Source: Klebsormidium nitens (lineage: Eukaryota; Plantae; Klebsormidiophyceae). From it: 57,939 nt of DNA. A program made the translations under genes and the position numbers. Under the pieces are notes generated by a model. It worked only from the letters and a program-made list of their open reading frames with translations, was not told the DNA's origin and ran no database searches. Positions 13,301 to 52,627 of this stretch are shown piece by piece (the first letter of the stretch is position 1; every line of letters begins with the position of its first letter). The DNA is taken from assembly GCA_000708835.1 (NCBI GenBank), contig DF237510.1, positions 1 to 57,939 on the forward strand, in the 5' to 3' direction.

Positions 13301-15707
13301 TGAAAGAAATGTTTGGAGAGAACATTTTTGGAAAGTATCTTCTGATCTCAGATTCTGTCCACAAGTGCCGGGCCCGGCGTGTTTCGACTCACCGACCTGA
13401 CAGTTATGATCTTTGTTGCTGCCCAAAGCAGAACAAGGCTCGTCTTTCTTCTCGTTGAAAATGTCTTCCAGTTGGCTGACGTCGCATGCCTTGCCCGCAT
13501 GCTGTGATGAAGTCTCAGGCGTTGACTATCAGACGGTTCCGGCCGCTTGGAAGACTGGCATCCTGACTTGCGATTTTTTTCTGACCGACTTTGACGTTCC
13601 TCGGGAAAACCCTCTAATCCTGAGCTTACTTATGTCTTCCTTCTGCTGACGTCACTCTGTGCGCTGACGTGACATGCGCCCACTGCCTGGTGATCCTCAA
13701 CCGCTTCGAGCCTTGTCTCGCCTGACTCAAAAGGGCACCGTTCCGATTGTCGCTTCCACAAAGGGGCTCTTTGACACTATCCAATTTGCTGCTGACCTCC
13801 TTGAATCCGCTGACGTCACAGGCGCGGACTACCTCGTTGTTCCGAGCCGCTTCGAGCCTTGCGGTTTGATCCAGCTGCAAGCAATGCGCTACGGCACCGT
13901 TCCGATTGTCGCTTCCACTGGCGGACTGGTCGACACCGTTACCGAGGGCGTGACCGGTTTCCACATGGGAGAGATGGACGTCGACTGTGAAGAGACCAAG
14001 CCAGAAGACGTGAAGAAGGTGAGTCGTTGACGTGTTAGAAGCTCAGTGTCAACTTATTGCGGGCCTCTACCAAGAGAGCAGCGGATTCTTTTAGCGTGGA
14101 CGCAATCAATTCGTCGAAGAAACCTGACGTCGTCAGGTAAGGACGCCAGCGTGTCTCCCGATGTCACTGCTCGCCCGTGTCAAGATTGTTGGGTTGCAAA
14201 GGGCGGTCGTTTTTTCCTACCGCTGGAATGAGTGTCCATCGTGTAGCCACCGCTTCTCATACCTGAAGAAGGTGCGGAGCTGCTTCTTTGAACTACAAAT
14301 CAGACCGTGGCCACCGTTGCTAGAGGTGGAATTGGACCCAATACTCGATCAACAACAGGTTCACCTGACCGCCAACCTGACATATAACCTACCTGTAGCA
14401 ATTTGGCTCCGATTCTCTCTCAGGTTAGGCGGGTCGAAGTTAATTCCCGGTTTCGGTCCTTACCCCCTTTTGATGGGTCGGTCGGTCCGGGAAAAACACT
14501 ACTTGGTTTTATGCTACCATGTGCAGAAAATAGGATATTGTTGGGCCTAAATCCTACTTTTTGCCCCAGGTGTCACAGTTTTCGGATTGCCATGACCCAG
14601 AATCGCCAAAATTAGGTTCAATAGTTGACAGTGTTGATATAATGTTCTGCACAATTTTGGGATTCTGGATCAGTCGAAGACCGGAAACCGGGACTTGACT
14701 TCGGATGGCCTTAGGAGACACTCAAAAAGAAGGGATAACCCATTGGTTGCTTCACTGCAGGTCGCGGAGGGCGTGACGAAGGCGCTCGAAGTGTACGGGA
14801 CGCCCCAGTTCGACGAGATGATCAAGGCGTGCATGCAGCTGAACCTGTCGTGGGAGGTGAGCCACGTCTACTTTACTTTAGGTGCTGCGGTTCGCAACTG
14901 TGATTTTAATCCATCATTGAAATAGCAATGCCCTCTCAGGGCGGTTTCGTCAGGTCGAACGGCTTGGCAAAACCGTCCAATGTTGGTGCGCCAGATCTGA
15001 GAGAATGGTCGAGGCGGTATGCAGTTGAACCTGTCGTGAGAGGTGAGCGTTCGTGTCTGTTTTTCCTGGTTGCTGCATCTCAGAGTTTGCGTTGAAGCAG
15101 ACGGTGTACCATTTTACGTTGCGGCGGCAGAGTTGCGGAGATATTTGGTACGTCACAGTTGACCAGCAATCAAGGCTTTTTGTTGGAGGTGGGCTTCTAT
15201 CCGACTGTCTGCGGGTGTTGTAACTTTAGTTCTCCCGTCATTGTTTGCTATTAAAGCATCTTTGGAATTGAATGACTGTCTCCGGGTTTTGTCTCTTCGT
15301 GGTTCAAGCACGCTCTGCGGGTGACGGACCTCCGGTTCTCGCATTTGGCAAAAAGGGGCTTGCTGTGCACCCGGCGAGAAGTGTGCAGACGTATGCAACG
15401 AAGGCAACCCTTGCCCGCATATCAAACAGTTGTCAAGCAAGGCTTGTCCGTTCGTTACAGTATGTTAAAGCCCAACCCCCAATTCTGAAGTCTGGATGCA
15501 GAATGAAGGGTAGGTGAAGAGTCGTGGAGAAGGCTGCGTTATGGTATGACTGAGAGTGACGGGTCTGTGGACACCTGATATTTGCTGCAGAACCCGGCCA
15601 AGGAGTGGGAAGCCGAGCTGCTGAAGTTGGGCGTCGCCTACAGCGAGCCTGGCAAGGAGGGCGTTGAGCTGTACCCCAAGACGAAGGAAAATGTCGCCAC
15701 TCCCTAA
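7349..15707 (+). CDS. GBSS1: Granule-bound starch synthase (GT5, waxy/GBSS), plastid-targeted, 13 exons, 627 aa
   Basis: Exons 7349-7693, 7967-8014, 8600-8680, 9373-9471, 9893-10046, 10498-10598, 10904-11013, 11520-11763, 12401-12577, 13052-13166, 13822-14018, 14761-14856, 15591-15707. All are GT-AG with matching phases, total 1884 nt. Motifs: Ser/Ala-rich transit peptide, [60 protein letters not shown], and the GBSS-type C-terminus KENVATP*. Confidence 0.97.
14954..15042 (+). other. Pseudo-exon: decayed tandem copy of GBSS exon 12 with intact AG and GT
   Basis: CAG|GTCG at 14951-14957 mirrors the true acceptor at 14758. Positions 15019-15048 match 14833-14862 at 28/30, including the GTGAGC donor. 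It is 89 nt long, so not a multiple of 3. Confidence 0.8.
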
Positions 15708-30995: not shown

Positions 30996-31091
30996 CTAAG
31001 CTGTCCTAGCATGTACCCTATTCCGAGCCTGGAGAACTAACGCTTGTATCTCGTCTTTCACGCGCTGGTCGAGCAGACGCCTGGCCGCTTT
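30996..31091 (-). pseudogene. 3' remnant of host gene C split by the transposon
   Basis: Reads (K)AARRLLDQRVKDEIQALVLQARNRVHARTA*. It joins in frame with ...LYFSNVEEADK at 50677 once the element and one TTT are removed. Confidence 0.8.
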
Positions 31092-31117
31092 CACAGGGCG
31101 GATTCCCGTTTCCCCGG
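31092..31117 (+). repeat. Left TIR CACAGGGCGGATTCCCGTTTCCCCGG
   Basis: Exact reverse complement of 50651-50676. Confidence 0.95.
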
Positions 31118-31330
31118 AGGTCGGGGAACCTCCGGGCAGCACCCCGGGGAGCGCGTTCCCCGGCCATTTGCCCGGACTTGGGCCATGTCCGGAATAGTTG
31201 TCAGGTCCCCGGGGTTTGCCCGGCCATCGGGCAATAAGTCCGGGCAATCAACCCCGGGCAACAAGGTCGGGCAACAGCAAACACATGTCCGGGCAACAAC
31301 AGTGCAGTGCAACCCCGGGCAAACAGCGGG
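31118..31330 (+). repeat. Left subterminal repeat region (multiple CCGGGCAA / CCCCGG motifs)
   Basis: About five or more (C/T)CGGGCAA copies plus CCCCGG/CCGGGG motifs, mirrored by TTGCCCGG at the right end. Confidence 0.8.
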
Positions 31331-33986
31331 GAATGATAGGGGAAAGAGAACGGCAATTATTCATGCATTTAACGCAACTGGCTCACAGCCTGTCTGAGAA
31401 AAGGTCAATAAAGAGGACGTTACAGTCAGTCTGGTTGCTTCTAGGTAGCGATCAAGCAACACGCTCGGACTGTAGCAGCCAAGCTTTGATGTTTCTCAGC
31501 TAAGAAGTGTTTCCCGACGAAAGCGGTAGTCTTAGCGAAGCCTCTCTGACTTGAAGTACACTGCACAACTCCAAACCGTGGACTACATTCTAAGAAAGGT
31601 TCCAGTCCCGTTCCAGTGCCAGTCTGTTTTTCAACTCTAACAAACCCGGCTCGATTGCAAGTTATTGATCTACCAGCTGCCAGGCAAAGCTCCCGAGCCT
31701 TGCGGCCCCGTTCCTCGTCACCATGCCCTGATTGCTTGTCTTCTGCACAAGCGAAGAGAACTGCCTCAGATTATGTAGTGAATTTATGCACGCAAACACG
31801 ATCCTGAAAGTTGTTGCGGGGGAACGCGTCTTGGCGGTTTCAAAAGTAAGCTGTCGTCGAAGAAGCGATTCAAAGTCTCACGTAATCAAACAGCTTGGAA
31901 TAGAACGAGATTTCTTCCTCAAAAAGCGTGGGCTATCAAATTACATTTTTCCGATTATTCTCACTTCAATAATGATCCGATGTGTTCCGTTTCTTGCCGA
32001 TGACTCAAAAACGGGAAGCTTTAGCGAACAGTATGAATGCAGACTGCAAGTTCTGCAAATCGAATTCAGCTTAACTGACTAGATTCTCTTCAGAGCTGCG
32101 CTCTTACTACGCACCTTCCTGCGGAAGAGGATTCAACGACTTGTCAGTTCGCGTTCCGTTTGGGTGCAATTGGGCATGATTGTTTCTGGCATTCGAGCGC
32201 CGCAGAGCTTCCGACGATGCAACTTGCTTTGCACGTCGTCTTGTATCCAAGAGTTTCGGAAGCGCAGCAAAAATCATACGCGTTTCGAGTTCATCGCTAT
32301 GAAGGCCTGGTTCAGCGACAGTTCATTACGCCCGATCGAACCTTTGATGGATCGAGATACAAAGCACGTCGCGACGTACTTGAGATGAGATTGAATGATT
32401 AAAGAGAGGCGCCGCCTTAGACTGCTCACCTGGACTTTACAGGAATAACTGAACTTTCTGTATGTCATCAGCCTGAAAGGAGATGTACGTAACCGTGTCA
32501 GTCACACAACGTATAAGCTAGAAAAATTCACATCAGCTTTGAAGGAGTCTCGGGACCTTGCATTCAAGCCAGTCACAGACTGTTTGACTCTGACCAGCAG
32601 CATGACCAGCAAGCAGCTGCTTTCACGCGCCAATTCCGTTCAAAGACAGCTCACGTCGCAGATTCCGGACGAAGTGTTCTTTAGAAAGAGGCTGAGCCTG
32701 CTCACCTCAACTATGCAGACGTGAAAGAAACTTCATTTGTTGACCCGAAAGCAGAAAATAGTGTCAGACGTACGTAGGCCGCGAGCGCAAGCATGCGTCT
32801 GCGCGATGAACGCCGGCCTCTTCGATATAAGGCGCGCCAACTATCGCGCGACATAACTTCTTACCAAAGCCGATCTGCGCTTGTTTGGAGGCGAAAAACT
32901 TCTGCGCCGAAACTGACGGCCGCTCTGATCTGCTCATGGTGCTTCGGTTCAGCGCACTAAACCCTAAAAACCCGTAGTACAGTTTTTCGAATCCCTGATA
33001 CTCAAAACCCTTGACGCCCTGACGCCTGGCATTCCAACCAGTCTTGTCGGTGCCCCGTTCAAGCACCGCTCTCCCTCTAAGCCAGCCGTCGTTCTTGCAG
33101 ATTTCAAACCGATTTCTTTAACCGCGCCCACTCCGACATCCACGATGCCAGTCGTGCAGGGAGAAGAGCTTCAAGTTCCTGAAAGGCGGTCACTTAACCC
33201 GCGCCCGCTAAACCCGCCTATTCTGATGATTATGATGCTTCCAAAGTCCGATTCCTATTAAAACACCGCCCTTTCCAACATTCACAATTCTTGTCCAGTA
33301 GGGCGGAAAGCTCCAATTTTCTGAACCCAGATCCTTAGCATCGCCCAGTCCGACAATCACGGTCGCTGTCCTGCAGGGAATCCTGAAACCCCATAGTCTT
33401 GAACCCCGATCCCTAAATCCTAACTTAAATTTCGAACCCAACCATTTCAAACCCCGTTTTCCAAATCCCGCCCACGTTTACATTCTCTCTGAAAGCTTCG
33501 ACCCCGATCGGTGGCTCCCAGGAGGTGAAGCCAAGCCACCGAAACACAACGAGGCGTACTGGCCATACGGTACCGGGCCGCGGGTGCATGCGCATTGGCA
33601 AAGGGTTTGCGATGATCAAAAGCAATCTGCTTAGCAAAACCCGAGCAGTTTCTTAACGCTGGAATCGGCTACAGCCGCTTCCGAGCATCCTGCCAGTCTC
33701 AGTTACAGAGGAGCGTTTCAGTTGCTTCTCAGACTTTCGCCTGAATGCTGATCTTAAGATACCAACTCTTGTGCGGGCTCCGAACTCAGAAGCGTGCTTA
33801 AGACGATGTTTCTGCTTAGAGCCGATGCTCTGGACTCGTGGGGGCTCCGACCCACTTTGAAATACATTCAGAAAGCCCCTCAAGGTACTGTACAGATGCT
33901 TCGATTCTGTCCCTCGGTCGGAACCCTGTAGGCTCGGAGTGCTTAAGCAGTGCCCTTGGAGAAATTCTCAGATGCAGAGTATTTAC

Positions 33987-36900
33987 CTAAGAGATGAAGA
34001 CCTCGTTCGGGCTCAGCTTCGCCCCGTCGTCGCGCCACTTCTTGTTGGCGATGTAAACGCGGCTTTCTTCGATGGCGCCTTCGCTGAGCAGCTTGAGCAG
34101 GTACGGCAGATCGAAGTCCTCCAACTCTGGCGACTTCGAGATGTTGTCAAGCTTGAGGCTATTGATTGCCTTGATGACTTCCTTCCGAGAGACCTACGCG
34201 GAAAATGAAGGCAGGAGCGAAGCATTTAGAAAGTTGTGTATGCAGACAAAGGGCAATTCTGGTTTTGAAGTGAAAGCCCATCCAATGACTGCATTCGATC
34301 TGCTTCCGTGATTCCAGGCGAAGAGGCTCAGGCGGGGGGCTCTTTGCAGCTGATCCGGTCTGCTCCTTTGTGGTCTTTCTGAACCTCAATCCAAGTTACG
34401 AAACTTTGCCAGACGGCACGTCGCTGTCAAAGGCATGATCGAAGCTTGCGAACTCTTTCCAAACTCCATACAAGTCCGAGGAAGATTAACGGCCAGACTT
34501 CAAGAGGGCACGACGACCGGAGTTTCTCTCGGTGCGCGCGCGTGTCCGCGTGCTGCCGGTCAAGCACCTGCGGAAAACGGAACGGAACCGGAACGGAATA
34601 CTACAGGAACGGACTGAAACGTGAAGGAAAACCCGAAAAGAAAAAGACCGCTCCTAGCAAGGGGGTTTCTCCCGGTGCACGCGCGCGCCCGCGTCTTGCT
34701 GGTCCTAATCCGGCGGAACGGAAGCGGAACGGAACCGGAACGGAAAGCTACCGGAACGACATTGAAGCGCCACGACCAGACTTCAAGGGCGCAAAACGGC
34801 GAGACTTCAACAGACAATAACGGTCAGATTTCAAGGGAGAATAGCAGCCAGACTTCAAGGGGGCACAACGACCATAGTCTCTCCCCGTGCGCGTGCGCGT
34901 GGCCGCGTGCTGCCGGCCAAGCCTCAGTGAAACGGAAAAAACGGAATCGGAACGGAAAGCTTTAGGAACAAACTCAAAAGGGAAGGGGATTCAAAAGGAA
35001 AAGACCGCTGCGCGCAAGGGGGGTTCTCTTGGTGCTCGCGCGTGTCCAAGAGAACTAGGATTGCAGTAAGCAGAGTGGTAACCAGGATGTTTCAGATCAC
35101 AAACCGCAGCAAGCAAACTGCGGTTTTCTCTTGCAACGGAATTTTTAAATCAGACTTTCAGTTCGGATCTCAGCAAACATCATCGGCTTCTGTACTCAAA
35201 TCTCAAAAGATTCGGTCACCCACACTCCATTTCCTGCGAGTTTTGGGTTGAACGATCTTTTTCCATTACAGAAAAGACAATCAAGTTTGAAGCAGTTTGG
35301 AAGCGGCTCTAGTCTCACCCTGTCGCACCAATTGCGTCATTGCCGAAACTAATCCTGGGAAAGAACGAAAGGACGAAGTTTCGCTCACTAGCTAGGGAAC
35401 TCTCAATGAAGGCCCCACGCACCTTCACATCTTCCTTACCTGGTATATGTACTTCACGCGCAGGTACTTCATGGCGATTATCTCGTAGTTGAAGACCATA
35501 TGTTTGTCGATCTTCTCGCCCTTGTCCTCAAATGTGCCCCCCATTGGCAGGTCGCAAACCGGGTCTTCGTCCGAATCCGGATCTGACGACTCGATGACGT
35601 CACCCGCAAGGTCCAGTTCCTCCTCGCTACATTCGGGGTCGCCCTTCTTTTGTCGCTGGGACTTTGGTCCGGCCGTTCCGTTTCTGCCCCGCTTTCTTCC
35701 ATCTGCACCCTTCGCCCGTTTTTCCGCAGCTTCCCCCGCTTCCCCAGCAAGCCCAAACTCGCACTCGCAACCCAGTGCCTTGCAAAGTCTCGGTTCGTGG
35801 ATCTTTCGCTGCTTCACAGCGTTCCGTTTTGGGCGCGCGGCGATTTCGTCTTCGTTTTTTCCGTTCCCGGCTCCGCTTTCTTCTTGGGGTTCGGTTGCGT
35901 TCTTTTCCGGGTCCTTCCTTTCAGCTTGCTCTAGGTGAAGTCCAGCCCCTTGATTTTTGTTTGTGGCCCCTTCTTCTTCCCCACTGGCTCCGCGGCTTTT
36001 CGTCTCGTCCTTTCTGCTATCAGCGTTCTCCCGTTCAATCTCCGAGTTCTTACCGTTCTGGTTTTCTTTGGGTTTGCTCGGCTTCGTACTTGGCCCGTCG
36101 CTCTTTGATTTTTTCTTTGAAGACTTGTCACCGCCTTTCCCTTTTCCGCTTCCGCTCTCTTCCGTCCGTTCCTCTCGAATCCGCTTCCCCTTTCCGCTTC
36201 CCTTCTCCTCGTTTCGTTCTTTTGGTACGTGCAGACTGCCCTTGGCGTCCCGCTGTGGCTGCTCCTCTAGGCCTTTGTTTGGCTCTGCTTGCTTTTCGGA
36301 TTTGCTTTCCGGACTGCCAGACAAGCCTGAGGGGGGATGATCGGCGGCCGGAGTTGCTGTCGGCACTGCAGCTTCCCAGACAGGCGCCGAACCGCTCGCC
36401 TTGCTGGCGGGAGTGAACGAGGTTGCCTCCCGGCTCCCTCCAACCTGGAAACATAGACAAAACTAGCGTCAAGTTCAGTTGAGCGTGGGAAATAAGCAAA
36501 CGGTTGGACTTTGCAAAGGCCAGGGTGCGTGCGTGCGCGTATGCTGCGCGCGATGTTACCTGCTATTGAGCTTGCTGATCAAAAGTTGTCTAACATTGTT
36601 GTCGCACCTAAAGGTGATTGGAAAAAGAAAGCGTTTGATAAGTGTTTGGAATCAGTCATCAAAGCGCGCAGCACACGAGGGACTTGGAACGAAACGGGTT
36701 CACAGAATACCCGGGTTAAACACCAGTTCAAGCCCTTCACATGCAAAACCGTTGTGCACAAGCAAACGCTGTTTTGGGAACGCTGCAGATAATCTATTCG
36801 TCAACGTCTGCCGTGCAACATCCAAAAGCAAGGGACTGAAAGTTGTCCTCTGAGATTCTATCCACCTTCAAAATGCGGCCCAGTCTGGCGCTAAAGCACG

Positions 36901-39900
36901 CGCGAAACAAGCTGAAATTGAATTAACCCAAAGTTCCACTCAGGAGGGCAGTCTGATGTGTTTACGCTCAATCAGATCTGGTGTGAAGACCTATCATGAC
37001 CAATCAAATGATTCAGAAGCTCTTACCGGGGTTTTGGCTAGTGCCGGACGTTCAAGGGGTCTGTTATGAATGGAGCCACGAATTCGCTTGTCGAAGTTGG
37101 ACCAAGCAGAAGTAAACCAAGAAGAAGTAGACGTGATTGCTTCATCTTTATCACGTAAAAAGTATGTCTATCAGTAAGGCATGACAAAGTGGCACCAACG
37201 CATTCTTCAAGCGGCATATCAAGAGTCGTCACGTTGATGAACCCTTTCGTTGCGGTTGGCTAGCCTGCTCCATTACAGTTACACTTTGAGTCAATAAGAA
37301 GGGCAGTCTTGTACAGATGCCGATCTTCAACTCAAATACTTGCATGCAAAATCTTCAAGCAGTCCAGATTCGAGACACCAGGCTCTCTTTTCAATCAGAT
37401 CCCTAACTCCGAAAACACCAAAACCGAACACATTCAAATCCTTGAGCGATCAGCGACCACTTTGAGACTCTTCGCTTAGTCAAAGGATCCAGCGAAGGGC
37501 GCAAGAGTTTATCAAGCAGACTTCAATTCTTTTGTAGCCCCATATACTGGTTCACTGAGCCTGGTAAAAGTTGTGAAACTGTGGCAGTTTTTCCAGTAAG
37601 GGCCCGTAGACGTACCTTTGTCAATCCTGAGCTGGCAGCGTGTGCTTCGCAGAAGAAATTCTCCCCATCGTACTCCTTGACGCCGAAGAGGTCGTTCATC
37701 ATCTTCTGGAGGCACAAGTTGTGAACCGGCTTCTGGCAAACGTGACACATATGGACTGGCCGACCGGTGTTTACCGAGCAGAAGCTCATGACGCAGCGGC
37801 TTTGAGCTGACTCTTCCACTTGTTCGTTCCCCTGCACATGAGGTGGCAAACGAGTTTGTCAAAAGCTTTGCACGATTCCTTACTACTATTGTCCAGGTTA
37901 CGGCAATTGCTTTGCCAGGTAGTTTTGATTTCAAAGCGGGTCCTACTCCGAGTGGTGAAAGTACCGGGTTTAATCTGTTGCTCACTACGTGTTTGCTGCA
38001 ACGAAGAGACATGTCACTCTTCCTGCAAGGCATTAGTAGTACCGCAAGATTTTCTCGATGCCGTACTGAAAGTGTGCTCTGATTCTTAAGACCATATATG
38101 GACCATATATGGATCTGGCTTTTTGCTCGATGAGCCGTTGCAGGTATCAAAAGATGCAATAATGATGAATCAGTAGACACTTTCCAGGGAAGAGGAGCAA
38201 GGTACCAGGAGCCTAATAGCATATGCCAAGATTGTTTGCTTGAGGCCCACGTTTGATCGCACCTGACCAATCGCTCCCTCTTCGCAAGAAGCCACCTGCA
38301 TTCCCTCAGTCCGGTTGGACGCGGCTGAATCTCTGGATTTTGATGACTGATGTCGGACGCCTTCGTCTCCCATGTCGTTCTGCAATAAGAAAGAGTCTTG
38401 ATATGATGTCCAAGGAACTGCAACTTGAAGTAACTGTACATCTAAGAGGACTTCCAAGTGAATGGTTGTTTTGACTCCGGAGCCTGGCTTGTCGAGTCTG
38501 CAAAGATTTGGACGGTATGCTACAAGCAATACGATACCAAGAACTCTAAGGACCATGCTTCTAGAAAGATGAAAGAACGCGAAACTGCTCATTGAAGCAT
38601 TGCGGTACCTATTATAGATTACAAACCCGATTATGGAGATTTGGATGGACGAGACCGTACTTGATTTTGGGGCTGGGTGAACCTTGCAGTTGAGCCCTCG
38701 TCTGCTGGCTTGGTCTGGCCGCCGCTTGCTTGGGTTGTGGACATGTCCTCATCCGCTCTTCTGCTGCCATTTGCCTACAGAAAAGGGCACTCACTTACAA
38801 TCAAAGGTGTGCAAATGATTGACCTGGGAAGTGCAACATCAATCAGCTCAGCTCAAAATCAGACACAAGAAGGTTGAGCAATGCCTCAGCAGCCTGAGTT
38901 ATACCGCAAGCTCCACATCATCCAGTACTTGCATGAACGTCTGTCACGTGACCAATTGCCTCTTAGTACTGACAGGTGACCAGTCATGCTCAAACTTCAC
39001 CGTACCTGCTTCTTTGAAGCTTTATACTTGGTAGCCTTCTTTGCCTGCTGTGCGGCGTATCGTTCAGGATGCAGTTTGACCTTCTTGAGCTGTTCCACAA
39101 TCTGTGAAAAGGTTCTGTTGAAAGACTCTGCAAACAAAAGCGTATTTTATAACATCAGCAAGCTTACTCAAAGTATCTCCGGATAAATACGCCAGAGTGT
39201 TTCCTTTGGTGCTGAATTCTTGAAAAGATCTTGACTTCTTCTTTGACCTGTTTGCTGGTTGAAATGCACGCCAAGCTGCATCCAAACTTTTGTGTACCGA
39301 CCGCAGCTTTTAGATTCAGCCTCACCAATGAGCTGTTTCAAAGTTCTAACCTAGTTCAATCTATTTCATATCACGAGCAGACCAGAAGCTGTTCAATTGA
39401 TCTTAGCATTCTGTCATGTTACCTGCTGGGTGCATTTTCAGCAGAAACAAGGTCATGTTCGAGCAGATTTTCATTTGGTAGATGGCTAGATTCTGCTGAA
39501 TCAACTCCTAGCCAGTGCTCAACAACAATTTTGTCAGGTAGCTAAATGGTCAGAAGCTTTGAAAAGTCAGAACATAACAGCATTCATCCAGAGCAGTCTC
39601 ACCTGCAGGCCACTTGTAGGATCTGTCACCCTTGACCAAAAGCACCCCACCATCAGTATCGTCCATAGTTTCTTTGAAAAGTGACTCTCTCCATTCGACA
39701 TCTTCTCTCCTCACTTTGAAGTTCATCCCTTTCAGCCTCTCATTTGTCAATCCATCTAGCGCATTTTCAATCCTGTCCTTTAGATCCTTGTACCATCTTC
39801 GCAGTGTGCGCACGGCAGGTTTTCCAATGATCTCCTCGTAGGCTCCACTGTGCACCATGTGAGAAAAGAGATCATCAGCCTGTATAACTCCACCAGCAGA

Positions 39901-40305
39901 AACCTTGTCATCCTTGCGTTGCTTCGAGTCTTCCTTGGCTGCCGGTTGTGCATTGACATCTTGTACTGTGGACTCCTCAACCTGTCCTTTCCCAACTGGT
40001 TCTCGAGATGCGCTACATGACTTCTCCTTTGATGATGCTCCAGCACCTTGCTCAGTGCTTTCCTGCCATTCAGCTTTCATCTGCTTCAAAATGGCAGAGT
40101 GACCAAGCTTAATTTTCACACCCGTTTCCAGCTCAACGATAGAATCAATTGCTTCATCTTTCAATGCCATGAATGCTTTGCCGGTCACGCAGCCATCGAC
40201 CAGGTACGTGCTGTATTTGGATGTCCCTAACGCTTCAGCAATGACACCAGCCAATTCCTCTTCTGTTAATCTGGTCACATTTTCAAGCACGGAGTTGGCA
40301 GCCAT
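33987..40305 (-). CDS. Transposon-borne multi-exon gene D: N-terminal SAM-like domain, PHD-like Zn finger, long K/E/S-rich region, small C-terminal globular domain
   Basis: Exons: 40305-~39604 (LTEEELAGVIAEALGTSKYSTYLVDGCVTGKAFMAL...KLGHSAILKQMK, SAM-like), 39127-39006, 38774-38661, 38379-38263, 37831-37616 (CVMSFC...HMCHVCQKPVHNLC...FFCEAH), 36444-35440, possibly 34567-34472, and 34193-33987 (stop). From 38774 downward all junctions are phase 0 with GT-AG. Connectivity between 39.1 and 39.6 kb is not resolved, so this could be two genes. Confidence 0.55.
34480..35070 (-). repeat. Degenerate 4-copy repeat (143/212/145-bp spacing) in a gene D intron, echoing the 34567 acceptor region
   Basis: TCTC(T/C)CGGTGCGCGCG-like blocks at 34525, 34668, 34880, 35025 with GGAACGGAACCGGAACGGAA tracts. 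CCAGACTTCAAG occurs at 34493 and 34848. Confidence 0.85.
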
Positions 40306-41454
40306 AGTTGCCAAGAATTGGTCACGCCACTCTCAACTCGTCTGCATTTGAGCGAACCAAGCAGTTGCCAGATCTAGACGTCAAGGCTGGACCGTATGGT
40401 TATGGCGATTGGCGCGCTGTGTGCCTCTACCTCCTCAGCTATTTTGCAGCTCCATTTTTGCATCTATCAAAGCTGAGCTGATTCCATGCCAGAGCTGATC
40501 AACCAGCTCCACTGGCCGGGTACTGATTACTGCTCATACTCAGAGTGGTTCCCAGCAGATGATTAGGCCCGGAGTTTCCGGCCAGAGGTGCCCCTATCTT
40601 ATCGACGGTTCGAAAAGGCAGTGAGAGGCAAATCGACGGACATCATACCAGGATTTCTGTGCGCGATCTCTAAAGTCCTGCAGACCCTAAATTCAAGATA
40701 GCAATTTGAGAGGGACAGGCTCCAAGGGGCAGAACTTCACCGAGACTTCACGTTTCAAAAGCACTTCGATCTGAAAGCTCGAAGTTGTCCAGCTAGGGCA
40801 CTGCCAGTGGTTAGATCAAGGCAGCAGCAGGCGGCCAGACTCTGATCTGAAGCTTAAAGAACTCTCGAAGTTATGGAGATCGATCTCTGTACCCAGCTTG
40901 CAGAAAGGAGCTGGAGAGTATTCGTTTGTGTTATATGGTATGTTCCAGCCTGAGGGAGGTGGTGCAAAACAAAGGAGCCTATGGTTTCAAGCTTTTGGTG
41001 CACTCGGTCTGCTGCCTGTAAACGAATGCACAACAACCTCAGGACGTAAGCGCCTTTGAACATGCAGACAAGTTTGACAAGATTAAGAGACGTTGGAAGA
41101 GACCAAGCTTCAGTCCAGGTTGTGACTTCAAATTTGTGCAATTTGCTGCAAGTTGAAGAGCACTGAGGGAGGGTGACTCGAGGAAGGTAAGTTGAATTGA
41201 CATCTTTTTTGACATTCATGTTTTTAACTGGATGTATGATGCCGTTTTTAGGTGCATTTCTAAGCTGGAAGTGCTGGCCAGGCAAAGTCTATGCAAAGGG
41301 TACTGTACATATGCATGGTATGCTCTGCTTAAAAGTCAGTGCTGTGTTGTGCAACGTCAATTGGATCCATCATCAGCATGACCACCTTAAATGAGACTAA
41401 GCTTCTGTGCTTTAAGACTGTAATATTGCCTCTTTCTTTGAACTTCTCAACCTT

Positions 41455-44400
41455 GTGGCCCCATGCATCTGCGACAACATTATTGCTTACGCATGGTCTC
41501 CTCCATCATGCAGCGTATCCAGACAGCCTCCTGTCAATGAGAACGGCCTTGAGCTTTGCACCTGCGTCTTTCAAGGCTGTGGCAAGAAGGACGGCCGGTT
41601 TATCCCGAGAACAACACGCTTGCATCAAGAGAAGAAAGACAGGGAAGTAATAGAGGCAGCAGAAGTAGTTCGCATCCCAGATGGCAACGGCGTTGAGATC
41701 AGAGAAGCAAACAATCAGCAACAGAATGCTGATCAGGCTCAGCCGGCCGGAGGTGCTGGTGGAAACGCTGTTTGGCAAGGGCTTGCAAACCTCCTGGACA
41801 TTGATGACAATGAGGCGCCAGACTTGAATCCAACAGAAGCTGAGGAAGCAGATTCAATGGAGGATTCGCTGCTCTCAGGAACAGGAGGGAGGTTTCTTGA
41901 CAAAGTTCTGGACTTAGTGAAAAAGGGCGACGAGGCTGGCTTTAGCAATGCCGACCTCGACTGGATCTTGAAGTGGGGTTTTGGTCAGAAGGACTCAATT
42001 GCAGAGGCACTGGATCCGGACTGGCGCGCCACAATGAAGGAGCTCAACGTTATGGATTCGCACGACCAGGTTAGCTTACATTTGTGCTTCGTAATTTCAT
42101 TGTCACCTTCTTCGTTTGACTTTAGATTCTGAAAGGTACTTCTGAGGCTTAAAATTATAGTCTGCATGAGTCCAGGTATATAGCTTAGCTGAGTCTTTTG
42201 TCCCTGCTCAATCTTTGGAAAGAGTCATTGGCTCCAATTCACCTTTTAGTGCAAACAACTTGGTTGATTGCTTGAAGAACAGACTTTGCATGAAGCTAAG
42301 GGGCTTGGAATCATAATATTAATCTGCATGAGTCCAGGTATACAGGTCAGCTGAGTGCTTTGTTTCTTCTCAATCTTTGGAAAGAGTCATTGGCAAAACT
42401 TGTCTTGGGTTCACCTTTTAGCTTAAAATGTTTTAAACAAGATGTCTGGCTGATTGTTTGAATAGCAGACTTTGCAGTGAAGCAAGCGATTCACATTTTG
42501 TATGCAAAACCATTTCACTTCGGATCGTCATCGTTGGTTACAGTTAATCACTTCAAGCTCCGTCCCCCTTTTGCCAACAGGTGCAAAGTTTCCTCATGCG
42601 CGTGTCGCGCCTGCTCGGTGAGCCTCAGATGTGGCGGTTTCACGAAGGAGCCAACGGCAGCTGGCACCTTTTCAGACCGAGCGCGGAAGACGGAAACCTG
42701 CCCTGCCCCCACTGCCCCGAAGGGCCCAGCCGGCCAAAGTGGCGCGACTGCTCCGCGCATCAGGAGCGGAGCGAATGCGGCTTCCTCCGGCGGGACGCGC
42801 TAGAGCTGCCCTACATCGGGCTGGAGCCGTACGTGCGGGCGAAGCTGACAACCGAAGCCGGCTGCCAGGACATGCTCGGGGCTTGGCGAGAAAGAGACAG
42901 GTGGCTGAATCAGCCCCCCGACAGTGTCCCGGAGCCGCAGCTGGAATACTGGGACGGGAAGCGCTTCAGGGAGCGGTCTAGTTTCCTCGACCCCAACGGC
43001 ACGTGGCTGCTCCCCCTCGCTTGCGCAAACTGCTGCCGTCCGCGCCCCGTGTACTGCTCTGAAAACCTAGAGCTTCCCTCCTACGTTCGTCCAACTCAAG
43101 CCATGTGGAATGCAACCACCGGAAGTTTTGAGACGGAGTGCCCCCTGTGCCGGCAGCCAATAAGCGCGAAGAGGGAGGAGCTGGAAATCTCGGGGGACCC
43201 AAGAAACGTGATCTTTGGTTGCCACGTAGATGGCTTTCCTTCCTCGCGCACGACAAACAAGAGCAGCTGCATCCTAGACGCAACCCCCCTGGTCGTCTCA
43301 AAACGGTTGCGCTACCGGGCCTGCGAAGGGTGGCTCTGGCCCCTTTGTTTTCCCCCGGAAGAGAAACTGAAAAGCGGGCCGGAAGCGTACGACCCGTTCA
43401 TCCTCCTTCTGGTCCTAGATTCGGTTCGGCTTTTTGTAGAGGGGATCTTGGTAAACTACGCCCTAGATCCTGCAAAAGTGAGCCCCGACGTTCCCCCCCG
43501 ACACGGACAGCCTGTGCGCATCCGGATGATAATGTCCTGCTTCTTCGCCGATCTGCCAGCCCTTGCTGACGTGGCGAAATTCAAAAGGGGGGGGTGGCAC
43601 GTGTCGCGGCGGTGTCCGCAGCTGGCTGTCCGAAACGGAGATCGGTTGGTGTACGCGAATGGGCGGCGGCTTGTGCGTGATGGCTGCGGAAGCAAGAAGA
43701 TGAAGGACGTGGTCGCGGCGATGCTGGAGCACCTGGGGGCAAGAACCAAAGCGGAGCGCGACGAGATCGGCGCGAGAACCGGGGTTGTTGGGTTCAGCAT
43801 GCTGGCCATTCTGGGGGGCGTGTACAGCTTGGACCTGGTGCTGGACATGTGCGGGGACTGGCTGCACAAGGGCTCGGAGAACCAGGTGAAGCACCACGTA
43901 AGAGACACCCTGCTTCCGGTCACCAGAAAGGAAGGCGGCCTCCTGGTGCAAGAAGCCCCCCCCCGGATCAACATCAAGGATTTCGGAAAGCGGCTGCAGG
44001 CGATAAAGCCGACGCGCAAGCTTGCAGACGGCCGGTGGGTCAAGGACCCGGAAGAGCGCCCCCTCGGGTTCTGGAAAGCGGAGGAGCACGAGAAGGTCGC
44101 GCTCTACTGCCTGCCGACTGCGTACGCGGGGCTCATTGACGAGGAAGGGTATGCCATTACCCAGCTCGTCGCGTGCATTCAGCAAGCAGTATTCATTGTC
44201 GGATCGCGGGAAGGCTGGACGCCGCAAAAGCGAGCGGTGTTTGACCAGCTGTGCAGAGCCAAGTTTGCGCGCGCCGAGGAGTACTTCGGCTCCAAGCTCC
44301 GCCCCCTGGAGCACGAGACCTGCCTTCACACCCTTTCTGATATCCTGAACCACGGGCCTCCGGACAGCCTGTGGTGCTATCTGTGCGAAAGGCACATCCG

Positions 44401-46328
44401 CAAGCTCATCAACACCCCGAGCAACGGAAAGGAATACGAAAAGACGTTGTTCAAGCGGGCATTGAGTGCTTTGGTTGGCGGATGGCTGCAACAGCGGAGA
44501 AAGGAAGCGGCGCTGTGGCGGACGCGGCAGTTCGCGGGAGATGAGCTGTGGGCCGAGGCAAGGGAGGGGTTTGAGGGCGGGATTCTGTTCGCCTCTTCTC
44601 AGAAAAGGGCCGTCGCGTTTGTCGAGGGCCTTGAAAGGTGGCCCCCAAGCAACCGGCAGCCGTCGGACGTCGACCTGCTCAACAGCGTCCAAGCAAACGG
44701 GGTCGCCGTTGGGAGTGTGCCACGAACCTGGGGTTTCCGTACGTTCAAGACCCTCAAATCCCCCCAGCGAATCGGCGTAGAGAGGTGCCTAGCCCGCGCA
44801 CCAAACGCAGCCGCAAGGGGCCTCCAGCTGGATCCGAAGACCGTAGTGAACCTGAAGAGCCTGCAAAGCGGGGAGCATAACTTTGCCCCAAAGGACTTCG
44901 TGGTCGTGCGGGGGGGTGCGCCGGGCGGGGAAGCGGCGGACGAGCAGTTCGGACGGCTGGAGAGCATCTTCTGTGTCGCGAATAGGCGAGGCGCGAGGCA
45001 CGTGTTTCTGGATGTGAGATTCTTCCCGGTTCAGATGGAAGGAGGCGAGCCAGCGGGGGGGCAGTGGCACAATTGCCTCTTGCTCGGCACTTTGAAATCT
45101 CTGGCGGCAGACCGCGTGCGCCCGGCAAGCAGCCTGCTGCGCCACTTCATTCCGTTCGCCGAGCCAGGCGAGACCGTGTTCACGAGCGCCGCGAACCACG
45201 TCATCGAGGTCTGCCCCACCGGCTTCGGTTTTGCAGCGCACGACGTATGGGTCCCGGTCTTTCCCAGGGTAAGTTCGGCCGGCCTTGAATCTATTTTAAC
45301 TGCCCGCATCGACGGAGTCGAAAATCTTCTCAAGGGTTGCCAGAACTGGAAGTAGAATAAGCAGCAAAGCGGTCGAACCAACGCGCAGACTCCTTGCTTT
45401 GTTTGCTTCACGAGTTGAGCTTGTAACGTTCGAAATCCGCAAACAGCCAGTCGGTGCGCGCGCACGTCGATTATGTTGACCCAGATCTCAGTCAACCAGC
45501 GCTTCAAACTGCAATGAGTCATTGCGCTTCAAGCCTCGTCTGTGATGAAGCCTCAAAATCCATTAACAAAAGGTTATAGCGCACTCAGTTCTACGCTCTG
45601 CAGCTGGATAGATTTGCCACGTCAGCGGGTAAGGCGCCGGGTTAGAGCGCGGTTAAGTATTGGTCAAGGCCGCGCTCGCCTCGACCCCTGATTCTACTGC
45701 GGTCTGCAGTTTTTAAACTCCCTTCCCTCCACGGACGCTCTATTACAGCACGCGAAGAGAAACGATTGGCGCGCTCAAGTTTTGACTCTCCTCTCTTCAA
45801 CAGGTTGGCGACGTCGTCCGGCTGCCGGTGGTGGAGCCTCCGGACGTCGTCCCGGAAGGGGTAGCGGGCAAGTGGGGCTACGGAGTGCCCGTTTCTGTAC
45901 TCAAGTCGGTGCGGCCGGGGCAGTCGGTGGCGTACGCTCTCGTCCGGCAAGTGAACGAGGACGGCAAGCTGGTGGACGTGCAATGGTTGAAGCGGGCTCC
46001 GGGCGAGAGGGCGCTTCCGGACGGCAGCAAAGCCGGCGTCTGGGGTTTGTGGCCGGTTAGCATGCGAAGAAACCGGAACGGCACTCTGGTCGAGGAGGTG
46101 GAGGGAGACTCTGCGAGCGACTCGGAAGAAGACGGGGAAAGAGGTCGGCGTCAAAGGGGCGGGGCAGCAAGGCCGCAAGGGGGGTTCGCCTTGAAGCGCG
46201 CGCCTTGGAACGCTCTCCTCGACCGTGTCGAGGGCGTTGTCAAAGCGGAGAGAGATGCAAACGGACGTGCTTTGGACGGAGGGCCACTTTTCAGTTTCAA
46301 AGAGCTCCCCCCGGTGCGGCGCAGATGA
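41455..46328 (+). CDS. CMC-EnSpm/CACTA-type DDE transposase (Tnp2/Transposase_21-like with DUF4218-like region), about 1250 aa, at least 3 exons, start codon unresolved
   Basis: Exons <=41514-42069, 42581-45268 (896 codons without a stop), 45804-46328, phase 0. Motifs: YWDG, RNVIFGCHVDGF (D1), FFADLPA (D2), SRRC (C2C position), GDWLHK, WKAEE, HETCLH (H-x4-H), HGP..LWCYLCERH (E). Confidence 0.88.
42150..42480 (+). repeat. ~162-bp tandem duplication inside transposase intron 1
   Basis: TCTGCATGAGTCCAGGTATA at 42161 and 42323; CTCAATCTTTGGAAAGAGTCATTGGC at 42207 and 42369. Confidence 0.9.
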
Positions 46329-47722
46329 GCGGGGCTTAGAATAGTAAGGGTAGAAAGGTGGGGCCCTAAAAACGGAAGCACGGAGAGCGTGTCACTTGCA
46401 TACAGAACCAGATTGATGTGGAATTGAGAAAGTGCATTGAGTACGGGCAGACAATCACCCGCTCATCTTTTCGTTTCTGGTGGATGGTTTGGACGGAACG
46501 GAATCCGAACGGCAGCAGAGTGGCTGGGAAAGCGGAAATTGGCGCCCGGTGGGGGCAGTCGGGCAGGTCACTGGTGGAAGCAAGGGTTCGGACAGCTCTC
46601 GAGCAGAGATTGGCACCTGGTAAGAGCAGCCGGGCACGCCCAGAGTGGAGTCGGGGTCGGCAAGGGGCGTCGGGCAGCCCCAAAACGGATCGGAGGCATC
46701 GAGGAGGGGACTTCGAAGAACTTTCCCCGGGTGCGGCGCATGATCAGGGGTATATCAGGTGCGTTCGACATTCGATCTCTATACTCTGTTAGATCAAGCG
46801 CAGTCATGATATGGCAAAGCTATCAAACTGCTTTTGCTTTGAGGTAGCAGATAAGGCGCACGCGCGAGTTCCCGGGCGATCCTGCTTTCTTCGCCCTTCT
46901 TCATGTGCTCAAGAGTTTCGCTTTGAACCTACTCGGAAAGCCTGGCAATCGTACGTTGCAAAGCTGGAAGATAAATCTCTTCAAGTTCGTGTTTCTTTTA
47001 AAGTTCCAGCTTGTCCCCGGATGATGGCGAACTTTCGGATGGTCCCTCGAAATTCTAATGGACAGACAATGTTTTGGTAGAGGGCTATCAATTGTGAAGT
47101 GCCGCCCGACGAGTGCCCATTTCAAAAAGAAAGCGAAGAATGTTTTCTTGCGGCTTGAGGTCAGGCGAATCCGTAATTTCATATGAACGGAGCTCCGTTG
47201 AGCTGGTCAAACGCTCTAACGGAGCGCGAACTAGCATGGCGGGAGAAAAATTCAAGGTTAAGGATTAACCCGAATCTCAGTTAGCTGACCAAATTTGCAG
47301 AACCCAGCAGGAAAAGGTACTTTGTGATCAGCTTAGCAAGGCGCATCCGAATCAGACCTAAAAGCTTATAGCACATGTACTTTCCGTAACCTGCGGAAGC
47401 TCAAGACCGCCACGTGTCCGGGTTAGGCCGGGTTATCGCGCGAAAATGCAATTCGATCGAAAATACCGTTTCAGCGCAGAGTTTAGAATAGACGTCTTGC
47501 CTGCTGATTTGCTTGCGCAGACTCGACGAGATTGCTGATGCGCCTGTTGTATGTTGCACGTTTCTTTCAACTTTTAACCAACTTCCGTGAACTTTCACTT
47601 AACTCTTCTAACCTACGCGTAGATTCTTAATGACTGGCGCCGCTCGAAGGCCCTCGAGGGGGATCCGATCCAATTCAAAGGAAGTTTTGCTGTTTCGGGT
47701 TTGCCGGTTGTTTCACTTTTCG

Positions 47723-47759
47723 ACCTTCCGTAACCTTCCGTAACCTTCCGTAACCTCCG
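47723..47759. repeat. Tandem decamer (ACCTTCCGTA)x3 + partial
   Basis: Read directly from the sequence. Confidence 0.85.
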
Positions 47760-50354
47760 CGCAGATCCGGAACGAGTGGCGCTGGCCCGATGCCCTCGAG
47801 GGAGATCCCCCCGTCTGGCGCGCCACGTCAGAGGGACCCCGCTCGACCGCCAGTTCCGCTTTGTCTTTTACACGTGGCGCGCCGGACACACGGCGCCAGC
47901 CAGCATGCGGACAGAGGGGCGCTGACGTCAGCCCGTGTGGACAGGGCGGTGCTGGCGTCAGCCCGGACCAGGCCCCGCTATTGCTGCTTCAGCAGACAAG
48001 GCAGCAGTTGAGCACGGAAGAAGTTGCACGGTGAGAATTTTGGTGACGTGGCTGAACGGGTGCGGTTACTGGGTGGCATGGCCACCAATGAAACGGCAAA
48101 ACCTGGTGCGGTCACCGGCTGTGAGAAAGGTCTCGGAAGCTGTGGTTTTTGAGAAAGCGCGCCGAGACACTTTGCACCTTCGTCTTGCTGTTTTGGGTGT
48201 TGGCTTTCAAGGGGTCTCGAGGTTGTCCCGTTGCTCGTTTGTCCTGCTCTCTAAGTTTTGGGTTTCGAAGGTTTGGAGGGGTGGAACGGATCAGTGCAAT
48301 TTCTAGATGGGGCCATTGTTGCGTGGAACCTGCGGTTCAACATCAAGAAAGCTTGGCGGAGGCGCTGATATAAGTCGCGCGCTTTTTGGACGATGTGGCT
48401 TCATTTTGGCCAGACTACGGCACGCTTGTACGGAGTCTTTTGGCGATGTTTTGATATGGAAAGCGACTTACCTGCAAGATGTTTTCGAAGACGTCCGAGC
48501 GCCTTGCTAGAGGCTGAGGCCGCCTCATGGCTGAGAAGTATGTACAGTAAACCATCTTCATTGTGAAACCTCAAAAGCACGTGTTTAGTATGCTGGGGCT
48601 TTCAGCTGGGCTTGTGGCCGTCCGCTCGGAATGAAGGACTGTTCTGGTGTTCTAAAATGAGAAAGAGCAAAACTCAGTCGTCGAGGGAACTTTCAAAAGC
48701 CTTTCGAAGTCAAGCTCTTTCAAGTCGGAACTTGGACTACCAACCATGGGGGGAAGAGACATGATAATCAGTGACCAAGAGCGGGTGCGTACGTGGAGCT
48801 CGCGCAAAACGAGGTAAGGTCCTGCTGCAACTTGAAGATCATTTGCCTGCCTTCTGCTGCAGCTTGTCCACGGTTTCCCGATCGAATATTGTCGAACGCA
48901 GATCTATGTGCCGTTCGTACTGGCATCGGTCTCTTCTCAGTCTTACCGTATTCAGATATGTAAGTCACTAAGGATTTCTAGTTCTCCAGCATTCAATGGT
49001 TTTAGCAAAGACTTCTCTTCGAAGTGTATCTTTGGCAGTACATCTTTGCAACGGTTTTGATTGTGAGATGAGATAGACCACCATAAGCGTTGCAAGAAGA
49101 AGAATTGCCTACTAATTGATTCTGACCAACTGCTCCAGTTGATCTCGTTTGCTTCATCGCTAAGCTTTCGACGTCTGATTATGTTAGAACATGTTGATTT
49201 ACACCATCTGCTACATGAATATCTCAATTCGATCCCTGATGACGAATCTCGACTTCGACTCCAGTGATTCGTCTCATCGGAGTTTTCAGTGAGAAATTGA
49301 AGTCGCCACCATCGTTTTCCAACCATTCACGATTCGAAACCAGGTTACACCTAGTTATTTCTATCCGGGGTGGCTCCGGGGTACATCTGGACCTTTCAAT
49401 ACACGATACATCTCAATTTCGTAAGACCTTTCGAAACAGGACACGTGTGAACTTTCTTAACCAGGGTGCATCAGCGGTAGATTCTAAGCAGGACCCCTGA
49501 AACAGGTTGTCGGTTCGATTTTGTCTCTGCATCCAAGTTCTGGTGTTGTCTTGCTACTACGTCTCCAGATGCGACAGTCGAGTCCGATGTTTTCATGTCG
49601 AACTGTGCCGCTCTTCGTTTTGGCCCAGCCCTGGTCAGGCTTACGTGGTTCTCTTGTTTGACATATGATAAAGCTTTTGAGTCGGAGCTCCAATTCGAAA
49701 ATGGTAGACGGCCAGGCCAATCCAACATGAAAAAGAGTGGAGTCCGGGAATACAAGAAATACAAGAGAGGATAGTTGCGAATGCCTGACGGAAGAACCTG
49801 AACCGTACGTATCCACGCTTTGTGGATACATATGCAGATATCTGGAGTACAGAACAGCAGAGCGCTCAGTGAGCACATCAAATATAGCTAAAGTTGCTTC
49901 AAGCCCAGTCATGTGTGCTCTTCTGGAGTCATGTATTTCAGAAAATACTTTGTCTTCGGGACCAGTTTTGCCCGGACCCGATCGACTGGCCCGTTCATAT
50001 CAGATACATACATACACACATGGCGTCTTTCTCATGCAGGATCAAGGGATGACTGGAGCTCGGAGCTGCATTGAGGCCGAAGCGGGGTCACACGAGGCGA
50101 TGGATTGTTGCAGACATAGATATCAGGTTGCACCGGATCGAATCTTGTAGTGGAGAGGATATATGTATATCAGAGGTTACTTCGGATCAGGCTTGCAGAA
50201 ACATTACAACTGCAACGAGACACAAGTTTTGGTACACATATATACTTATTTCGAAACTGTTTTCACAAGCCCGGCTGTCCGGGCTGTCAATCAAGACACT
50301 GCTGATTCGCTTTTCGAACACGCTGGAATCTGGAACGCGGCTAAGTAAACTCCT

Positions 50355-50650
50355 CCCCGGGGTTCCGTCCGCTGCCCGGACTTGCTTGCCCGGACTTGTT
50401 TCTTGTGTTCCCCGAGCATGCGCGTTCCCCGGTGTATCAGCTTTTGCCCGGACTTCGTTGCCCGGAGTTTGCCTTCGTATTCCCCGGACATGTCTGTTCC
50501 CCGGGCTTCCTTACCCCGGGCAGCAGCTCGGGGAGTCATTTCCCCGGCCTTATCTCCGGGGAACCCTTGCCCAGGGATCCTCCAACCCCGGGCAAATCAT
50601 CCGCCAGCCCGTTGCCCGGCCTCAGGCCGGGGAAACCCCGGGCAGTAAGC
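50355..50650 (-). repeat. Right subterminal repeat region (multiple TTGCCCGG / CCCCGG motifs)
   Basis: Inverted counterparts of the left-end CCGGGCAA motifs. Confidence 0.8.
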
Positions 50651-50676
50651 CCGGGGAAACGGGAATCCGCCCTGTG
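50651..50676 (-). repeat. Right TIR
   Basis: CCGGGGAAACGGGAATCCGCCCTGTG, followed by TTT. Confidence 0.95.
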
Positions 50677-52627
50677 TTTGTCCGCCTCCTCGACATTCGA
50701 GAAATACAGATAGCGAAGCGGCCCGTCGAGCTGAGGACCGGAAGGATCCACAACCACAGCGCCCTTATGCAAAAGCGGACAAGGCACTTCGTGACTTATG
50801 CGAAAGATCGACACCTCAAACCGAAGAATCGGCCGCGGCCCCTCCGCAAACGAAGCTGGAAAAGTGAGCACGACTGCCGCCCCTTCTTTCAGGTCCGTAT
50901 CCGGCAAGTGCCGTACCCTCTCCTCCGGCAAAAGCGTTGGCGTATAAAACGCCGTTCCATCCTCTGGCGGCCACGTCTTGTGTCCAATTGCCTGGCACGA
51001 GATCGTGACGTACACCGGAAGACGTCCGTACGTTTGCAGGTGGAGCCGGACGCCCGTTTGGGTGACGTCAGAGATCCGGACCTCGAGGAACTCGAAGGGG
51101 CCCCAGGAAAAGGACCGGCTGACGTCAGAAATGAGGCACGCTGGCGTGTGCACCTGCATCTGCACTTTGCAAAGCGAGTCAGAAAAGAGGCCCGAGATGA
51201 CGGGGCTGCCGCGTACGTAATATTAACCGGAGAGTCATCGTTTAGGTTATCTGATGTGCTTCCGATCCGGGACGGGAAAAGGTGACACGTTTTGAAGTAC
51301 GCAGCTCGTGACACTGACCAGACGAAAGCTCGTGATTAGTCACAGCAGGACTACTATCACAGCAAGCACAATATAGACCTTCTCATGATTAACATAAATT
51401 TTGACCCGCGCACGTTTCAAGCCTTTCGTCAGCCTCGGGCCTTTTGATCCCTGTTGGAGGTTTGAAAAGGTGTCGGGTAATCTGCGTACTCGCCTTTTAA
51501 AAAACATCAATCTGACGTAGCTGGATTACGTCTTCATCAGAAAAGAACAGCAAGATTATGCCTCTCTTGCAATAGGTAAAGCATCAGTAAAACCGGCGTC
51601 CTTCCAGCAGCTACACCTTTGAACATTTTCATTGGAGGAAAGAACGTGCAGAATTCAGACCCTGGCTTAGTTGAGCAGGTTCAAGTTAACAGCTTCTTGC
51701 TGTAGAAGCCAGCGTAAAAGATGCTCTTAGAAGGTGACGGACAAACTTAGGGATTCCTGCGAACAAACCTGTCATTACTCATCTTCTGAATCGCCTGAAA
51801 GTTCACCCTCAAACAGCCGTAATCAAAGTTGTTTAATCTCTTCAGAACGTTTCCGTTTCCGGGACAACGGAGCTTGGCTCGGACCACGGCACGTCCAGAT
51901 CACTAGCACAGGAACAGATCAGCATTAACCAAGTTTGAAGTTGGTTGCGTGCCCATCTACCAAGAGAACGCAATTTATGTCTGGTTCGATGCTCTTTCAC
52001 CATTTGACAATAGGGGCAAAAGCTTCAACGTCTTGTGTGCAGATCAACCTTGCTTCATAATCGAGGATGCTCTTAAAATTTGAACAAAGCCTCTCACCTC
52101 ACTCGAAGCGTTTTGTTCACCGTCCCCCATTTGCAATCCTGGCTCACAACAGCTCTCAGAACCCTCAGGTTCAGGATAATCATCATGAGAGTGCCGTGCC
52201 GGGGAAATCATGTAAATGGCGAAGTAGACACCCCGCATGTAACACCGGAGTGTGGCCGCCACATGCACGTCAAACGCCAGGATGTGGTCGCCGTAAAACT
52301 CCCTCAAGAACGCCAGACTATCCTTCCGAGCTCTTTCCAAACTGTTGTGCGTCAGTTGGCCGGAGATCACGGTTGGATTGCCCGCGTGCACTACTGTCGT
52401 GCCTCCATAATAGCTAAAGCCGACGTCAGCGACCAGGACGGTGACCAGCTGTTTCTGCAATTCCGGTGTCCATTCGGAGGCCGGAAGGGAAGATGTGAGC
52501 AGAAAGGTTACTTGGGGAGATGTTCCGAATGGATGGACCTCGAACGGGTCGACGTACTTCAGGCTGGTTGTGGGGCTTGTCGCCGGAAATTGAAATACGA
52601 ACTCACTTGAGTGTAGGAAAGTCGCCA
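50677..52627 (-). pseudogene. 5' part of host gene C (unknown function), interrupted by the transposon
   Basis: Open frames 52627-52049 (MATFLHSSEF..., GT donor at 52048) and ~51165-50677 (...SRSFSWGPFEFLEVRISD...LYFSNVEEADK). Exact splicing between them is unresolved. The beta-rich segment may be MATH-like (weak). Confidence 0.6.

Follow-up and report, generated by a model that had tools for sequence, protein, structure and literature searches.

What is the segment at positions 31092-50676 of contig DF237510.1 of the charophyte green alga Klebsormidium nitens, where a transposase-like gene stands between two perfect inverted repeats? Analyzing the stretch of that contig shown above (57,939 nucleotides, hereafter the 57.9-kb window), we consider it very probable that these 19,585 bp form a single DNA transposon of autonomous type, complete in structure and belonging to the EnSpm/CACTA lineage (the CMC or 'CMCT' clade). 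The evidence comes from the ends of the element, from the predicted fold and catalytic core of its transposase, and from the protein family to which that transposase belongs.

The two terminal inverted repeats (TIRs) pair at 26 of 26 positions, so that the element reads CACAGGG...CCCTGTG, and a TTT triplet abuts it on either side (Table 1). Because a C precedes the left TTT and a G follows the right one, the target-site duplication (TSD) is at most 3 bp long. Assignment to EnSpm has been based on 5'-CAC..GTG-3' termini together with 3-bp TSDs (PMC12730594), and both are present at this one insertion. Short repeats in both orientations fill the subterminal regions: CCGGGCAA occurs 12 times in the window on the two strands taken together, 11 of these within ~330 bp of the element's termini, with the majority orientation flipping from forward at the left end to reverse at the right, and the related CCGGGGAA, which the TIR also contains, is present 15 times, nine of them in the element ends. 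A tandem array found by TRF (31228-31276) lies inside the left subterminal array. The CAC...GTG termini, the 3-bp TSD and the mirrored subterminal arrays are those of the EnSpm/CACTA elements of plants (En/Spm, Tam1), which the K. nitens element also resembles in its large size and in carrying several genes. Perfect TIRs, TTT on both flanks and mirrored subterminal repeats had been reported in an earlier reading of the letters alone (the original prediction), and all three stand. The same reading had called the element giant, which is overstated: at 19.6 kb it is large yet not exceptional, since sizes of 15-23 kb are known among the CACTA elements of plants.

These observations also bear on the simplest alternative, namely that there is no mobile element here and that an inverted repeat, arisen by chance or structural in nature, happens to surround two host genes. 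We regard this as barely credible. The only support for it is that no second copy was seen (in the window, the TIR 26-mer has no further match at up to 3 mismatches), whereas the 26-mer found no match in 100 shuffled sequences, the repeat arrays occur at the two ends only, and a transposase gene lies between the repeats while the TSD lies on their flanks.

The product of the long open reading frame (ORF) within the element is 100% identical to NCBI KFL_005610060 of K. nitens. The gene consists of three exons separated by GT-AG introns and encodes a spliced product of 1141 aa; its second exon, with GT-AG introns on both sides, is exactly the uninterrupted 896-codon exon that the original prediction had described, and as 23-25% of the element's 19,585 bp fall within the gene, the accompanying statement that about three quarters of the length lies outside it is likewise correct. 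An AlphaFold2 model of the transposase built on a 150-sequence alignment reached a predicted local distance difference test score (pLDDT) of 87.5 and a predicted template modeling score (pTM) of 0.88. When this model was compared with solved structures by Foldseek, the best matches in the PDB were the RAG1 core (E 4.5e-8), followed by BbRAGL, HzTransib and the transposase of the P element, and alignment with VIA-align placed transposase residues 8-716 on RAG1 residues 459-1008 with a Z of 15.9 (476 aligned residues; root-mean-square deviation (rmsd), 5.2 Å). The likeness to HzTransib (Z 14.0) is one of fold alone.

The residues of the active site follow the same pattern. In mouse RAG1, the catalytic residues are D600, D708 and E962, and zinc is bound by C727/C730 and H937/H942 (PMC4914335). 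The distance from the first to the second Asp is 107 residues in the K. nitens transposase and 108 in RAG1, the C(2)C positions follow the second Asp by 18 and 21 residues (19 and 22 in RAG1), the His pair has the form H-x4-H in both, and 20 residues separate the last His from the Glu in both. Based on this RAG1-like spacing and on conservation among relatives, the catalytic Glu is most likely E674 rather than E572, the Glu of the WKAEE motif. A full D-D-E triad was found in 17 of the 20 relatives that span all three positions. The D/D/E, H-x4-H and WKAEE motifs of the original prediction could all be located, and the motifs of the CMCT clade are present as D288, D395, H649-x4-H654 and E674, with the C(2)C motif in the form S413-x2-C416 plus H411. 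These catalytic and zinc motifs are common to the whole CMCT clade, i.e., to EnSpm, Mirage, Chapaev, Transib and RAG1, the members of which mostly have 5'-CA..TG-3' ends and TSDs of 2-5 bp (PMC12730594); therefore, the RAG1-like features do not make the element a 'plant RAG'. Compared with RAG1, Transib and ProtoRAG (BbRAGL), the element is alike in the predicted fold over ~480 residues, in ends starting with CAC and, for RAG1, in the near-identical spacing, but it differs in lacking both a sequence-level match and a RAG2-like partner.

The link to CACTA elements was obtained through the relatives of the protein. A word-based search over a collection of 5.8 billion proteins, with the K. nitens proteome included, returned KFL_005610060 as the only 100% match, followed by K. 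nitens paralogues at 85% and then 52% identity, and a single protein from outside, P0008 (26% identity, E 1e-41 over 574 columns), which carries a sub-threshold Transposase_21 match; the same type of search using the family alignment returned nothing beyond the family itself. An exhaustive profile search yielded 784 relatives at E<=1e-3 (72 at E<=1e-30). Upon scanning the 75 of them that are longer than 330 aa against Pfam, we found that 25 matched PF02992 (Transposase_21, which is the Tnp2/TnpD family of the CACTA elements) and that none matched another transposase family. One of the 25, P0017, exceeds the curated PF02992 cut-off (35.6 bits at a threshold of 28.6) and reaches 3e-80 against the Klebsormidium profile. 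P0045 also has a weak Transpos_assoc match. Homology to Transposase_21 is thus seen via intermediates and not as a direct PF02992 match of the transposase. All named relatives come from the liverwort Riccia sorocarpa or the fern Adiantum nelumboides, and a quick tree, unrooted and built on the core, recovered a Klebsormidium-like clade (SH-aLRT support 100) as sister (93) to a clade of Riccia and Adiantum proteins (99). The tree, built without labelled outgroups, speaks for in-group structure only. The CMC/CACTA-type (EnSpm) classification of the original prediction is supported by the PF02992-linked relatives, by the RAG1/CMCT fold and spacing, and by the termini, the TSD of 3 bp and the subterminal arrays. 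A protein scan of viral contigs gave no match, and a metagenome scan gave 13 distant loci only (22-43% identity, on short contigs); no clear TIRs were seen at the two loci of 9 kb. Among the paralogues, P0006 (K. nitens KFL_004010040, of the 52% group) is a broken copy with internal deletions that span the D288 region and approximately aa 520-800.

Several observations weigh against the EnSpm/CACTA assignment. Even at E<=10, Pfam gave no match for the transposase or for P0002-P0007, its six close relatives, and PF02992, DUF4218, DUF4216 and Transpos_assoc all fail to recognize the transposase itself, unlike what is seen in plant EnSpm/CACTA elements. As the tree contains no labelled EnSpm, Mirage or Chapaev references, the placement within CMC draws on the link to Pfam, on the length of the TSD and on the distribution among plants. 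The call was made on one copy, and the single TSD has a chance of 1/64 by itself. The first Cys of the C(2)C motif is replaced by Ser in the Klebsormidium-like clade, where a His stands two residues upstream (H-V-S-R-R-C), while C-R-R-C is kept in more distant relatives. A Cys-rich N-terminal frame that may bind DNA lacks an in-frame start. Lastly, the terminal pentamer CACAG departs at its fourth position from the textbook CACTA or CACTG of plant elements. We attach little weight to this last point: CACAG is a minor variant, the fourth base of the pentamer already being known to vary, and an active fungal CACTA element with CACTG ends has been described (PMC12810828). That element, CNIRT6 of Cryptococcus neoformans, is alike in being a CMC/CACTA-type system with a variant pentamer and 3-bp TSDs (PMC12810828), whereas it is fungal, has been shown to move and has other accessory domains, the K. 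nitens element being known from sequence. The earlier description of the ends as non-canonical is literally true of the pentamer and yet overstated, given that CAC...GTG termini and a 3-bp TSD fit EnSpm.

Some of these points could be read differently, with the element belonging to another or a new CMCT lineage (a Transib-like or Chapaev3-like one, or a streptophyte lineage of its own) and only resembling CACTA elements. The RSS (recombination signal sequence) heptamer is CACAGTG, of which CACAG forms the first five bases, and Transib elements have 5-bp TSDs. Besides this similarity of the ends, the top solved-structure matches are RAG1 and Transib, no direct PF02992 match exists, and the quick tree sets the Klebsormidium-like and land-plant clades apart from the clade of the PF02992-passing P0017. 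However, the search of PDB sequences with the family profile found no transposase at all, only spurious repeat-protein matches, and because no CMC transposase turned up there, RAG1 may head the structure list for want of a closer solved one. Furthermore, the motifs are shared by the clade as a whole (PMC12730594), and the 25 of 75 relatives with PF02992 matches stand against 0 with any other transposase family. The duplication of 3 bp lies within the CMCT range of 2-5 bp and falls short of the 5 bp of Transib, to which the transposase is linked by the HzTransib fold and not at the sequence level. We therefore judge a lineage outside EnSpm proper to be distinctly unlikely, and retain an EnSpm/CACTA-lineage transposon as the best description of the locus.

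Whether the element is still mobile is a separate question. The original prediction had presented it as young and as part of a recently active family, for which we find no support: the nearest paralogue is at 85% identity, no second copy was seen, and the Cys-rich frame has no start. The window contained no other TIR copy, a collection of genome contigs searched with the TIR gave no match, no close copy was found in viral, prokaryotic and metagenome collections, and no paralogue above 85% identity emerged from the 5.8-billion-protein search, so that the element looks single-copy among annotated genes. The perfect TIRs bound its age only loosely, because 52 identical bases exclude, by our own arithmetic, only a divergence above roughly 6% (95% confidence). 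An EnSpm/CACTA element that is an immobile relic, i.e., a single old insertion with ends intact by luck and a transposase that is N-terminally truncated or silenced, thus has a chance that we put just below even. Such a relic would agree with a protein that matches only itself at 100% before falling to 85% and 52%, with TIRs that permit up to ~6% divergence, and with the absence of a start codon from the frame that is homologous to the P0002 N-terminus. It agrees less well with three annotated exons that are all open, with the presence of every catalytic and zinc-site residue, with perfect TIRs and an intact TSD, and with a 5' intron that could provide the missing start.

Before the annotated Met of the transposase there are 134 open codons without an in-frame ATG; an ATG at 41508 stands in another frame. 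A candidate 5' intron (41188-41513) is suggested by a strong donor at its start together with an acceptor at 41513; this donor yields no in-frame start, and weaker donors do. As a separate feature of the gene, intron 1 contains an 80-nt direct repeat (42153-42232 and 42315-42394; 86% identity; spacing 162 nt), and exon-flanking duplications with the same ~160-170-nt period occur at 26.5-27.6 kb, 11.3-11.6 kb and 13.6-13.9 kb of the window.

At the insertion site, we restored the sequence expected before integration by joining the flanks with one TTT. A minus-strand frame (30999-31091 joined to 50680-51222) then runs for 212 codons without a stop and a plus-strand frame for 218, and these frames had no Pfam match and no protein relatives of 100-317 aa. 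The insertion may have taken place in an unannotated host exon or in an older repeat.

Apart from the catalytic core, the element differs from plant EnSpm/CACTA elements in its accessory domains. Transposase residues 775-942 (44690-45193) align to BAH domains, with DNMT1 BAH1 as the best match (Z 8.6, 112 aligned, rmsd 3.3) and with ZMET2, ORC1, BAHCC1 and TNRC18 close behind (Z 7.5-8.3), while Pfam gave no match over these residues. These residues look like a BAH domain in the predicted model, the matches being consistent with one another but barely above the level that is commonly seen. When folded alone, the domain encoded by exon 3 was modeled with low confidence (pLDDT 65.8) as a small beta-barrel only weakly similar to SH3, Tudor, chromo and BAH folds (best Z 5.1), and it could not be assigned to any of them.

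The second gene of the element, a partner arranged head-to-head with the transposase, was compared exon by exon. No exon matched a Pfam family above threshold, a TnpA-type family included; SAM-like and PHD-like parts are suggested instead. As leads only, its first exon is SAM-like (Atlas 0.88; mixed matches and no Pfam match), and its exon 37858-37526 (minus strand) is PHD-like (Atlas 0.91; 10 of the 10 best neighbours are PHD fingers). The latter exon shows a C-x4-C...C-x2-C-x4-H-x2-C...C-x2-H pattern, and its Pfam matches to PHD (E 0.13) and zf-HC5HC2H (E 0.062) are both below threshold. A further long exon (36462-35428, minus strand) is rich in K, E and G and probably disordered.

The remainder of the element is largely without assigned content. 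Pfam gave zero matches above threshold for the transposase, 30-odd other ORFs of the element and the flanks, Rfam gave no match over the whole window, and no function could be assigned to the leftmost ~2.9 kb (31.1-34.0 kb) or to the rightmost 4.3 kb (46.3-50.7 kb). Tandem repeats occupy 47723-47756 and 47909-47965 in the right interior. The palindrome TGACGTCA, which we take to be a CRE/bZIP-type core, occurs both within the short repeats at 47909-47965 in the element and within those at 13643-13715 in the host region.

Taken as an EnSpm/CACTA-lineage transposon, the element would be expected to move as follows. The transposase would bind the CAC-ended TIRs, possibly assisted by the partner protein acting in a TnpA-like manner on the CCGGG[C/G]AA repeats; the two ends would then be paired and the element cut out by DDE chemistry, and reinsertion at a 3-bp staggered cut would produce the TTT duplication. 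As a conjecture, the BAH-like domain and the PHD-like finger of the partner may link this reaction to chromatin. A stronger version, in which the whole Klebsormidium-like branch is chromatin-guided, with a BAH-like reader on a RAG1-fold transposase and a SAM/PHD-like partner steering insertion or shielding the element from silencing, is speculative and in our view unlikely; if true, DNA transposons would have in it a counterpart to the chromodomain integrases that chromoviruses carry.

Table 1. Coordinates of the element's parts in the window (positions of the forward strand; residues numbered along the transposase).
Feature	Position	Strand	Remarks
Left TSD, TTT	31089-31091		Matches right-flank TTT; not extendable to 4 bp
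Left TIR, starts CACAGGG	31092-31117	+	26/26 complementary to right arm
Left subterminal array, CCGGG[C/G]AA motifs, mostly forward	31118-31330		CCGGGCAA forward at 31240, 31254, 31289, 31315; reverse at 31168, 31216
Partner gene, head-to-head with transposase	ATG at 40305	-	Exon translations
Cys-rich open frame upstream of annotated start (LELCTCVFQGCGKK)	41455-41856	+	65% identical to N-terminus of paralogue P0002
Transposase exon 1	41857-42069	+	aa 1-71 of KFL_005610060; GT donor at 42070
Transposase exon 2	42581-45268	+	Exactly 896 codons, within a 924-codon ORF; RAG1-like catalytic core and BAH-like domain
D288 (HVDGF)	43229-43231		Conserved in 83/87 relatives
D395 (FADLPA)	43550-43552		Conserved in 86/90 relatives
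H411/S413/C416 (HVSRRC, aa 411-416)	43598-43615		C(2)C zinc-motif position
WKAEE	residues 569-573		E572 conserved, inside helical insertion
H649-x4-H654 (HETCLH)	44312-44329		Zinc-site motif
E674 (WCYLCER)	44387-44389		Conserved in 46/49 relatives; on helix 671-681
Transposase exon 3	45804-46328	+	Small beta-barrel of SH3/Tudor/BAH type, then acidic disordered tail; fold not assignable
Interior without assigned function, about 4 kb	46329-50339		No ORF >=150 aa, no Pfam match
Right subterminal array, CCGGG[C/G]AA motifs, mostly reverse	50340-50650		TTGCCCGG at 50386, 50444, 50458, 50612
Right TIR, finishes CCCTGTG	50651-50676	-	26/26 complementary to left arm
Right TSD, TTT	50677-50679		Matches left-flank TTT

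The element belongs to a known kind of transposon and not to a new one, and its value lies in what it adds to that kind. With both of its boundaries defined, it can serve as a clean reference copy for the EnSpm/CACTA lineage in a charophyte (streptophyte) green alga, and the confident model of its transposase details the RAG1-like architecture of a CMC transposase, with a D/D/E triad and a zinc-site spacing nearly as in RAG1. The BAH-like and PHD-like parts are candidates for chromatin targeting. That relatives of the protein occur in a liverwort and a fern is suggestive of a long-lived streptophyte branch of these elements that has been overlooked by the standard Pfam models.

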